Positions 26,227 to 29,900 are shown, counted from the first letter of the stretch. The stretch is DNA of 64,000 nucleotides from Octopus bimaculoides (GCF_001194135.2 NC_068997.1:22525210-22589209); one strand, 5' to 3'. Program-made: numbers and translations. The notes: generated by a model not told the origin, from the letters alone.

Positions 26227-26372
26227 ATAATAATAATAATGATAATAATAATAATAATAATAATAATAATAATAATAATAATAATAATAATAATAGTAAT
26301 AATAATAATAATAATAATAATAATAATAATAATAATAATAATAATAATAATAATAATAATAATAATAATAAA
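26227..26372. repeat. (TAA)n microsatellite
   Basis: Directly visible. The same-strand array resumes at 26924 after a ~550-bp insert. Confidence 0.95.
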
Positions 26373-26923
26373 TGCCTTCTCATGCAGTAACCAGGTTTTC
26401 ATGGTTTCTCATCTTAACTGATTGGAAGTTTTATCATGTACATTGTTGGTCTTGGTATAAAAAATGGTCTACAGAAAATATTCTGCTCAATACTACAGAT
26501 TTGCTTCTCAGTTGTTTGACTTTAACCACTTGAACATGTTCTTTAGTGGCTGACGATATGTGCAACTCTGATCACGGGCAGACTATCGGGAGAGCATCAT
26601 AGCCATATGTTGAGAGGAGTTTGTTTGGGGTTTGGATAATTCACCTTTGAAAACATGAGTCTTTCGTTCAACATCCTTAAGCAACCCTTATTCAGGAACC
26701 TCTTGAGCGGGTTGAGATACTTGACCTGAAGAAAATTTTAACTTGGTTCCATCTGCAAGGTCATGTGCGGTTACTCTTGATATATTATCACCATATCGCG
26801 CACATATGGTTGTGATGCATGTACCTGGTGTACCCTAATCAGACGGGTACTCATGGTGGGTATACTGGGCTTCGTATATTTTACACCAGCGTCACTTTGG
26901 TGGCATGCACTGCTCTCTCACTC
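26373..26923. mobile_element. ~550-bp non-coding element embedded in a (TAA)n array; putative non-autonomous retroelement
   Basis: Complex sequence with sharp boundaries, (TAA)n on the same strand on both sides, and no ORF of 60 aa or more in the supplied track. Single copy in this window, so mobility is inferred. Confidence 0.55.
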
Positions 26924-29900
26924 AATAATAATAATAATAATTATTATAATAATAATAAGTAATCGCTTTATTACGTAACTTTAAGTTGCTAGATTCCAGC
27001 TCCCGTTGTTTAAATCTACCAAAACTAGGGCATGCACTGAATCAAACAAAATTCGAACTCATTAAAAATTCATATTTCCGTTTCCAGCCCGACACCACGA
27101 AGCAGCGTCAGCTTCTGTTTATGTAAATGCTTCTGCAGTAGGATTCATAGCTTACACTACTGCCACAATAACACTAAATAACACACAAGCGAAGCAGCGG
27201 CAGCAGCAGTATTGCAAGATATGTTCCATTGATCTTCGTTGGATCAAGAAGAACAGAATAAGCAACATTAGCAGCAGCAGCAGCAACAGTCTTAGCGGTG
27301 ATAATAGTAACGGAAGCTGCGGCAGTAGCAGTAGTAACCTATATTGTTTAATTCGATTTCCAAACATTATATGTGTTAACGGCTATTTTAATCGTTGCAA
27401 GTTTCCATATTGCCTCCCGCTTATTTTCTGACTAACATACAACAGAAGTATCCATGCGAATACATACATACATACATACATACATACATACATACATACA
27501 TACGTACTCTCTTGAAAGTTTATAAATTCTTTTGAGATCAGTAATGTTTGTGTGTGTAATATCCAAATATATATTTTCTTCCGGTGGTAGGTAAAAATCA
27601 AAGAATATATATAGCTGGTAATTAAATTAACTTTGAGCCACAAATCAAGACTTTACATCGTTTACGCAATTATACTATATTTTGTATCTGAGGTTTTTTA
27701 ATTCGTTACATTTTAGTGAAAGTAATACAGTGGCAAAAGTAATATAGTGACAAAATTTGTAGTCAGATATGTTGAACTTTTAATTTCCTAAGTACTTAAC
27801 CTATTACAGAATTACACGGATGCAAGGAGTTTCATTTTTAGAGAAATATTTGTCACATATAAGAATTTATATAACAGGATACAGAAAGATATTATTTTGC
27901 AAAGTATATTGTGGAAGAATGCTCTGGAAGAATGTCTGCTAATTACTGAGTCTATTCCAATGAAATCATTAAAATTATTTGACAATTCATAATAGAGATC
28001 TTTATGAAAATAAGGTGGTAAACTAGCATAATAGTTACTGGGACGGAAGAAATGATTGGCGGTTTTTCTTCCAGTTCTTCTGGCGATTTTACCTTTCATC
28101 CTTTCGCGGTCGAAAACCGGTACGGATGTCCGAAACTGACCATCACCACTAATTTGCAGGCGTTTCGCCATTATCAGAAAGAATTGTCTAAAAGAATAAA
28201 TGAATGATTTGTCTCTAATTCAGACAGAAGACCAAACGGTTTCTACATTGGGTATAAATCAATTGAATAGATTATAGGATTTCATTGTACATTAATAATT
28301 AACCTGGAAGTGTACATGGTGGGATTTCATCTCTGATATATATNNNNNNNNNNNNNNNNNNNNNNNNNNNNNNNNNNNNNNNNNNNNNNNNNNNNNNNNN
28401 NNNNNNNNNNNNNNNNNNNNNNNNNNNNNNNNNNNNNNNNNNNNNNNNNNNNNNNNNNNNNNNNNNNNNNNNNNNNNNNNNNNNNNNNNNNNNNNNNNNN
28501 NNNNNNNNNNNNNNNNNNNNNNNNNNNNNNNNNNNNNNNNATAAGTATTCCCTAAGAATTAAGGCACAGCAGCATTTAAGAGGCCATTTACGTTAAGTAT
28601 TATATGTGCGTGTGTGTGTATATATGTGTATGTGTGTACAAATTTATATATGTATGTATTTATACATATATGCAGATGTATATATATATATATATATATA
28701 TATATATATATATATATATATAGATAGATAGATAGATAGATAGATAGATAGATAGATATACGAATATATGTACATAATTATGTATAAATACATATATATG
28801 TATGTATATATACATATGCATGTATTTATACGTTGAATACGTATATGTATCTATACACATATATGCATATATACGTGTGTGTGTGTGTGTGTGTGTGAGG
28901 TTAACGATATATCCTATGTGTTGTTGGGTTGTATAATTACATTAAACCAACTTTCTAGCATTCAACGTGCAGACCGAACTAGAAGTTGGGGCACCATTTA
29001 TGCCTTTTAGCTGTAAATAATTCTTTTCAGCGGAAGAATGTAAGGATCGTTGTTGGATTCTTGGTTATGATATGTAATATTTTAATCTATTTTATTGTGC
29101 TCTGTAGTTGAGTTTAATAATAAATAGATCAACAGACAATTGAATCATGTAACCAGTCAACAATGGCATTAAGTTTCCAGGTTACTGAGCTCGAAATATT
29201 TGGTAATATTATACTTTTCCCTTATATTCTATTCTGTATTATCTTATTCCTACCTATATATATATATATATTAGTGTTTGCGTGTATCTGTGTGGCGTCG
29301 AATGTGTTTGAGTGTACGCTTTATTTTCTATGTGCTTATCTGTTACACATGGATACGATTCAATTATTCATTATATCGATATCACTGAAAATCATGTATC
29401 CGGTTCGTTTAAATGGTCTGTGACCATTACGTAATATATGTATGCATATGAATAACATATCTTTATATACATATCTACACATGTATCTACGTGTATTTGT
29501 ACGCGTGTATGTATTTTATGTATGTATACTTAACGTTCGTACCTACGTATGCATTTTCACATTCGCATGTGATATACGGATATCCTTTTAATTTGTATTT
29601 ATATTTTTATATACCTTCACAGTTGTGGCAATGCTGGATCATCACTTCCATATTTTGCCATTTTCAATCAATGACTACGTATAATGCTGTATTGCAAACC
29701 ATTTATTCATATGAAAAAATATTTTGCATACATAGAAGCCAAACATCGTGTAAACAAATTCACTTCCTGAAGAAACCGCCGAGAGGAATCTTGAAGTTGC
29801 AGTGACCACTAACATAATTAATAAATCTTACGATGCCAGTACCATAGTGTCCCATCACCATGTAATATGTGTGGTTTTCTCTAAATTTTATTGATTAACA

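Follow-up and report, generated by a model that had tools for sequence, protein, structure and literature searches.

We analysed a 64,000-nucleotide stretch of the Octopus bimaculoides genome (GCF_001194135.2 NC_068997.1:22525210-22589209; hereafter the window), in which a complex non-coding core of ~550 bp lies between two TAA microsatellite arrays. Our data suggest, with a probability that we put at about 0.6, that this core and the (AAT)n run on its right are a full-length copy of an abundant, ~550-bp, non-coding retroposon family that depends on a long interspersed nuclear element (LINE) and that has inserted here into a pre-existing (TAA)n array. The locus had been singled out earlier from the sequence alone (the original prediction) as a non-coding stretch of ~550 bp that splits a same-strand TAA array. 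The coordinates and tandem-repeat finding (TRF) confirm this layout, with TAA read on the + strand in both arrays beside the core (Table 1).

The layout by itself is not beyond chance. The window is an AT-rich draft sequence with many gaps and microsatellites, and its 59 kb of non-N sequence contain eight TAA arrays of this kind; TAA arrays cover ~1.2% of the window. About 0.55 same-strand TAA pairs within 600 bp are expected and two are seen (P ~0.1, a rough Poisson estimate), so that paired same-strand arrays are not rare in the window. The core is single-copy within the window, with no match elsewhere in it. The architecture gains its meaning from the family copies at other loci that support it.

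A six-frame protein search with the core gave a single match, the O. bimaculoides gene model A0A0L8FVA6, which served as the entry to other loci. Through a cluster member of this model we reached 33 kb of chromosome CM046623.1 (L001) and, through the neighbouring gene, another 37 kb (L002). The window and these ~70 kb of an unrelated chromosome region amount to ~117 kb of non-N O. bimaculoides DNA, the sample to which the counts below refer. Copies were searched for by blastn and by an nhmmer profile built from the copies themselves. Six copies were identified, the window copy and five others (A to E), with pairwise identities of ~83-92%; the profile matched the window core over positions 2-551 and revealed no more diverged copies in the sample beyond the six. 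These results bear out the view that the core belongs to a multi-copy non-coding retroelement and is not unique DNA. The left flank of the window copy (25888-26226, 339 bp) is single-copy in the sample. The O. bimaculoides genome comprises ~2.7 Gb, and without the two index copies four copies remain in ~117 kb; a rough extrapolation gives a copy number of tens of thousands, up to ~10^5, genome-wide. Conserved motifs of the element gave 0 matches in two exact-pattern scans of metagenome contigs.

The copies define the polarity and the ends of the element. All five copies that keep a 3' end carry (AAT)8-30 directly after ...GCTCTCTC(ACTC), which identifies the right-hand (AAT/TAA)n run as the 3' tail of the element itself. 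Copies B, C and E are truncated: they have lost the left side and kept the right end with its (AAT)n; therefore the + strand of the window is the sense strand, and TAA lies on it. Such 3'-anchored 5' truncation points to LINE-type target-primed reverse transcription. Moreover, the two longest copies (window copy, copy A) share their first base (ATGCC), and the DNA further upstream is unrelated. A common first base together with unrelated flanks argues for a discrete unit of ~550 bp rather than the truncated 3' untranslated region (UTR) of a LINE.

The core has no coding capacity. Its longest stop-free stretch in any frame is 53 aa, and no open reading frame (ORF) with a reverse transcriptase (RT) or endonuclease is present in it; the six-frame protein search gave no match to either enzyme, exact look-ups of two core ORFs returned no recorded protein, and tblastn of proteins from LINEs with a restriction-like endonuclease (RLE) gave no match in the core. 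The element is thus best regarded as non-autonomous, as had been proposed, since the core lacks an ORF and six-frame protein searches match nothing except a paralogous copy that has been exonised. ARAGORN found no tRNA in the window, no B-box match at <=1 mismatch lies inside the core, and no terminal inverted or tandem terminal repeats of the core were found; the earlier statement that the sequence has neither tRNA A/B boxes nor terminal inverted repeats is upheld by these searches.

The original prediction also described a fold near the right end and suggested a search for ribozymes of the hepatitis delta virus (HDV)-like or hammerhead type. The hairpin does form and is found in three copies (CCTGGTGTACCC...GGGTATACTGGG), but the fold of the 3' 134 nt does not stand out from that of shuffled sequence (z = -1.24, with an equally good fold in 22 of 200 shuffles), and the alignment fold of three copies has a covariation term of -0.1, the hairpin pairs being mostly invariant or broken. 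Conserved RNA structure at the 3' end is therefore not supported, either by the shuffle test or by compensatory changes among the three copies. No Rfam family, ribozymes including the hammerhead among them, was found in the core (cmscan, E <= 10, 25500-27800), and a loose descriptor of HDV-like 5' ribozymes yielded no P1 at +1 and no candidate common to the window copy and copy A. The ribozyme search thus came out negative by both the Rfam scan and the descriptor, two sequence-only methods that divergent ribozymes could escape.

Because it has no ORF, no RNA polymerase III (pol III) head and no detected ribozyme, we regard the element as a non-autonomous, unclassified retroposon resembling a short interspersed nuclear element (SINE). 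Its SINE-like traits are its short length, its non-coding nature, the (AAT)n tail and the dispersed copies, three of which are 5'-truncated. Three more specific assignments were tried and rejected: a pol III SINE (no tRNA by ARAGORN, no Rfam match and no B box in the core), a Penelope-like element or retrozyme (no hammerhead in Rfam, no tandem or inverted terminal repeats) and an autonomous Dong/R4-clade LINE, which is ruled out by the absence of an ORF with RT and a CCHC motif plus restriction-like endonuclease. The most fitting label is that of a LINE-dependent non-coding retroposon with a microsatellite tail, new and unclassified, though probably annotated by machine already. As the evidence stands, it is an ordinary LINE-dependent repeat and an ordinary kind of genomic parasite.

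Table 1. Features at the window locus, further copies of the element and fragments of RLE-type LINEs; unprefixed positions are those of the window.
Feature	Location	Strand	Remarks
Upstream (TAA/ATA)n array	26227-26371	+	48.3 units, 97% matches, 145 bp (TRF)
Complex non-coding core (retroposon body, full length)	26372-26923	+	552 bp; first bases ATGCC, last ...GCTCTCTCACTC
3' tail (AAT)n	26924-26963	+	13 imperfect units, 89% matches, 40 bp (TRF)
12-bp hairpin in 3' region, CCTGGTGTACCC / GGGTATACTGGG	26824-26869	+	not statistically supported
Copy A	L001 17896->17345		full length; 82.6% identical to window copy
Copy B	L001 9968->9748		profile positions 333-551; 5'-truncated
Copy C	L001 19405->19360		profile positions 506-551; 5'-truncated
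Copy D	L001 28404-28560		profile positions 97-268; internal fragment, older-looking
Copy E	L002 5014-5163		profile positions 402-551; 5'-truncated
RLE-type LINE, degraded C-terminal fragment	58322-58898	+	CCHC zinc-knuckle and restriction-like endonuclease
RLE-type LINE fragment	L001 12010-12804	-	(ACAT)n on both sides, not TAA; same LINE type as 58322-58898
RLE-type LINE fragment	L002 14656-15600	+	ACAT-rich microsatellite after it

The flanks of the copies bear on where the element lands. The window copy is preceded by 145 bp of TAA and followed by a 40-bp tail, and copy A is preceded by ATAATAATAA (10 bp, L001 17906->17897) and followed by a tail of 29 bp. The 5' flank of copy B is nothing more than degenerate AT-rich sequence, and those of copies C and E are without TAA. 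The chance that a 5' junction adjoins a TAA run is ~1%, as estimated from the array coverage of the window. At the other end, the tails of copies B and E run straight into the 3' termini of antisense copies of SINE-B, a tRNA-derived SINE with ~39 copies in the 117 kb and a tail of (ATT)n, the complement of (TAA)n; exact tail sharing of this kind has a chance of ~3e-3 per junction (rough estimate). The truncated 5' end of copy E adjoins the head terminus of another antisense SINE-B, so that its layout is exactly that of a SINE-B tandem, like the one at 37600-38330 of the window, whose inter-SINE array has received the element. Thus, of the five copies with a 3' end, four adjoin a TAA run that was there before them, two through 5' TAA and two through SINE-B tails. 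Small as this sample is, it makes it likely that the element prefers existing TAA/TTA arrays as landing sites.

The relative ages of the two families give the order of events. SINE-B copies have a mean pairwise identity of 74% and are about twice as diverged as copies of the element, for which the pairwise figure is 84-92%; the SINE-B copy next to copy E is 72% identical to other copies and 80% identical to the consensus. Since SINE-B is the more diverged and older family, the element most likely entered pre-existing SINE-B tails, and not the reverse. Two copies, B and E, therefore sit in older SINE-B tails, which fits the earlier idea that SINE tails create the targets. At the window locus, the left array is most likely what is left of a target microsatellite that predates the insertion, the less likely alternative being the expansion of a few TAA units at the element's 5' end, and the right (AAT)n run may have fused with whatever remains of the target array on that side.

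Several observations weigh against insertion into existing arrays. TAA lies 5' of both full-length copies and of none of the three truncated ones, so that the 5' TAA may belong to the full-length element and not to the target. The predicted pattern of TAA on both sides in a fixed orientation accordingly holds for the window copy and, weakly, for copy A but fails for B, C and E, where the tail is one-sided; a one-sided tail is what the original prediction itself had named as evidence to the contrary. Copy A could also be an ordinary insertion that carries a 10-bp target-site duplication of ATAATAATAA. In addition, the family is known from six copies, and two of the loci were ascertained through a copy.

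These flanks are what would be expected if the element were a TAA-tailed non-autonomous retroposon with near-random integration, for example with the octopus RTE, a LINE with an apurinic/apyrimidinic endonuclease. The 5' TAA would then have been carried by the full-length RNA or represent a short target-site duplication, and the long left array would be a later expansion or an unrelated neighbouring microsatellite, which the frequency of same-strand TAA pairs in the window would allow. Moreover, the 3' UTR of RTE-2_OV is mostly microsatellite (repeat type not stated), and RTE is the LINE for which recent activity is indicated in O. bimaculoides (PMC9115989). However, two of five tails meet the 3' termini of older antisense SINE-B copies exactly, copies B, C and E show no visible target-site duplications, and a 48-unit array of 97% purity would be a large expansion from 3 units. 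We therefore consider near-random integration unlikely.

It is more improbable still that the element is the 3' UTR of an autonomous LINE left behind by 5' truncation. Every copy is 3'-anchored in the profile search, and Octopus LINE UTRs can reach ~600 nt (PMC9115989), both of which would suit such an origin. However, the two longest copies end at the same base with unrelated DNA beyond it, none of the six copies extends further 5', and tblastn reveals no RT- or endonuclease-like coding sequence adjoining any copy. Finally, unique intergenic DNA between two independent TAA microsatellites, for which the single occurrence of the core within the window might have spoken, is already refuted by the five further copies at L001 and L002 with their common 3' end and tail, and a DNA transposon or miniature inverted-repeat transposable element by the lack of terminal inverted repeats and target-site duplications; both are dismissed.

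The helper of the element is most plausibly a (TAA)n-specific LINE of the Dong/R4 clade, a candidate that we infer; an octopus RTE remains the rival candidate. Dong targets (TAA)n in moth, mosquito and snail (PMC3812793), and Dong of Bombyx mori, which possesses an HDV-like ribozyme at its 5' end, has (TAA)n directly upstream on the sense strand (PMC3774820). In O. vulgaris, Dong-R4 LINEs are plentiful and have been active recently (PMC13282606), and for O. bimaculoides a full-length consensus of Dong is available (PMC9115989). The original prediction placed R4/Dong-like LINEs in the window itself, with the core as their putative UTR-derived passenger; an RLE-type LINE is indeed present there, but solely as a degraded C-terminal fragment (58322-58898) without sequence shared with the element. 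Relatives of this fragment carry RVT_1 and zf-RVT domains.

The evidence on the helper also includes points on the opposite side. The core has no similarity to the RLE-LINE fragments of the window, L001 and L002, which are without clean 3' ends, and the fragment in L001 is bounded by a microsatellite other than TAA. No multi-copy family ending in (AAT)n, as a candidate for the 3' end of a TAA-tailed LINE, was found in the sample, and a 5' ribozyme such as that of B. mori Dong was not found in the element. Judging from the flanks of the fragments in L001 and L002, octopus may have an RLE LINE associated with (ACAT)n that differs from a TAA-specific one. Single-sequence, representative and profile searches with the window fragment led to no named Octopus protein, nor to an octopus locus that could be used: the single-sequence search yielded a mis-annotated Hox model alone, and the RLE LINEs obtained by the representative and profile searches came mostly from ENA, JGI or Logan assemblies. 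A further locus reached via an RLE LINE (L003) was rejected as an octopus locus, because neither the element nor SINE-B is present in it.

We hypothesize that insertion would proceed as follows. Element RNA ending in (UAA)n would be bound in trans by the endonuclease/reverse transcriptase of a LINE, which would nick a TAA/TTA microsatellite on its (TTA)n strand. The (TTA)n 3' end exposed there could then pair with the (UAA)n tail and prime reverse transcription; an early stop of cDNA synthesis would give rise to 5'-truncated copies, and the (TAA)n tail of the new copy would fuse with the target array. In the window, the element would have inserted into a pre-existing (TAA)n array, of which the 145-bp left run would be the remainder. 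The preference for such arrays may reflect active targeting by the helper or a passive annealing preference. Because many TAA arrays are the antisense (ATT)n tails of older SINE-B copies, the element would often land tail-to-tail in SINE-B.

The original prediction combined SINE tails, an RLE LINE and a passenger into a three-tier system, an idea that is plausible and partly supported by our data. In its fuller form it would be a layered system of tail complementarity, in which an old tRNA-derived SINE seeds (ATT)n tails and a (TAA)n-specific Dong/R4 RLE LINE homes a younger, ORF-less element of ~550 bp, with the complementary (TAA)n tail and with neither a pol III head nor a recognisable ribozyme, to them in antisense. 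We put this forward tentatively, as a doubtful extension of insertion into existing arrays.

In its behaviour the element resembles a passenger of a LINE that is specific for microsatellites, and among known systems Dong, an R4-clade RLE LINE of Bombyx mori, Anopheles, Biomphalaria and Octopus ('Dong-R4'), is the closest. This comparison covers flanks and integration features. As in Dong, sense-strand (TAA)n lies upstream and downstream of the window copy and, weakly, of copy A; LINE-type integration, 5' truncation and the lack of an obvious target-site duplication are common to both, and Dong-R4 is abundant in Octopus (PMC3812793, PMC3774820, PMC13282606). In contrast to Dong, which measures roughly 4-5 kb, the element is 552 bp long and has no ORF, no HDV-like 5' ribozyme was detected in it, and its truncated copies are without 5' TAA.

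The closest non-autonomous precedent is provided by R2 SIDEs, internally deleted derivatives of R2 (PMC3414825). The element would match them in concept, as a short non-coding passenger that uses a site-specific RLE LINE and is expected to share its target. However, SIDE ends (the 5' ribozyme and the 3' end) are homologous to the parent R2, whereas no ribozyme was found in the element, and the copy number of the element, extrapolated to tens of thousands, is far higher.

A third comparison is with microsatellite-tailed SINEs and the 'unilateral microsatellite families' derived from RTE and other LINEs, which also have a simple-repeat 3' end (PMC2887409). In such families many microsatellite loci share one common flank, and of the 19 (AAT)>=5 arrays in the sample the element similarly accounts for 5 and SINE-B for ~8. 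RTE-type insertions, however, have target-site duplications of 10-20 bp and show no regard for existing repeats, whereas no duplications were seen at copies of the element and four of five copies meet older TAA runs.

SINE-B resembles the element in that both are abundant, LINE-dependent and trinucleotide-tailed and appear to insert into arrays matching their own tail. It differs in having tRNA-like A/B boxes and an (ATT)n tail, it is the older of the two (74% versus ~87% pairwise identity), and the two have no sequence in common. In the window, positions 37600-38330 hold tandem antisense SINE-B copies with a (TAA)n array between each, a layout which suggests that SINE-B inserts into the tails of earlier SINE-B copies.

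Other features of the sampled loci were recorded in passing. A second split array lies at 57468-57920 of the window, where (TAA)n at 57468-57570 and (TAA)n at 57868-57920, on the same strand, enclose a 297-bp insert; this insert is single-copy in the sample, and long (GAG/GAA)n and (CAA)n runs follow the second array. At 48378-48597, (TAA)48 stands head-to-head with (TTA)25, with a palindromic junction beside a truncated SINE-B, which could mark where the tails of two oppositely oriented retroposons meet. A second SINE-like family (…GATCCGATCAACGGAACAGCCTGCTCGTGAAATTAACGTGCAAGTGGCTGAGCACTCCACAGACACGTGTACCC…) occurs at 47101-47400 of the window and at 12190-12530 of L001, where it interrupts the RLE LINE fragment. 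Window positions 12407-12646 (+) are stop-free over 80 aa and contain the reverse-transcriptase motif YLDFAKAFDKV; by eye, this resembles a fragment of a CR1/L2-type LINE.

Repeats also appear in gene models at these loci. UniProt A0A0L8FVA6 starts with 38 residues (MTTRLIRVHQAHASQ...) that copy B (L001 9718-9968) encodes in antisense and that are absent from the newer RefSeq model XP_014786617.2; A0A0L8FVA6 represents a repeat exonised in gene prediction. The window is placed upstream of an O. bimaculoides Hox homeobox. Exon 1 of RefSeq XP_014781016.1 ('homeobox protein Hox-C6-like') matches the ORF at 58343-58636 with 99% identity; in this model it is spliced to a homeobox exon outside the window, and as a first exon it is probably mis-annotated.

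Taken together, about a quarter of the sampled TAA microsatellites are tails of the element and ~40% are tails of SINE-B. The origin of TAA arrays matters for octopus repeat annotation and for microsatellite marker design, and gene models are affected as well, since a copy of the element entered one of them as a coding first exon. Should the TAA-array preference and the reliance on Dong both be borne out, the element would be a natural, high-copy non-coding RNA delivered to a simple-repeat target by a site-specific LINE. If the layered system is true, the element would be the first non-autonomous, high-copy passenger to be described for a microsatellite-specific RLE LINE, and one retroposon family would create the safe-harbour sites of another.

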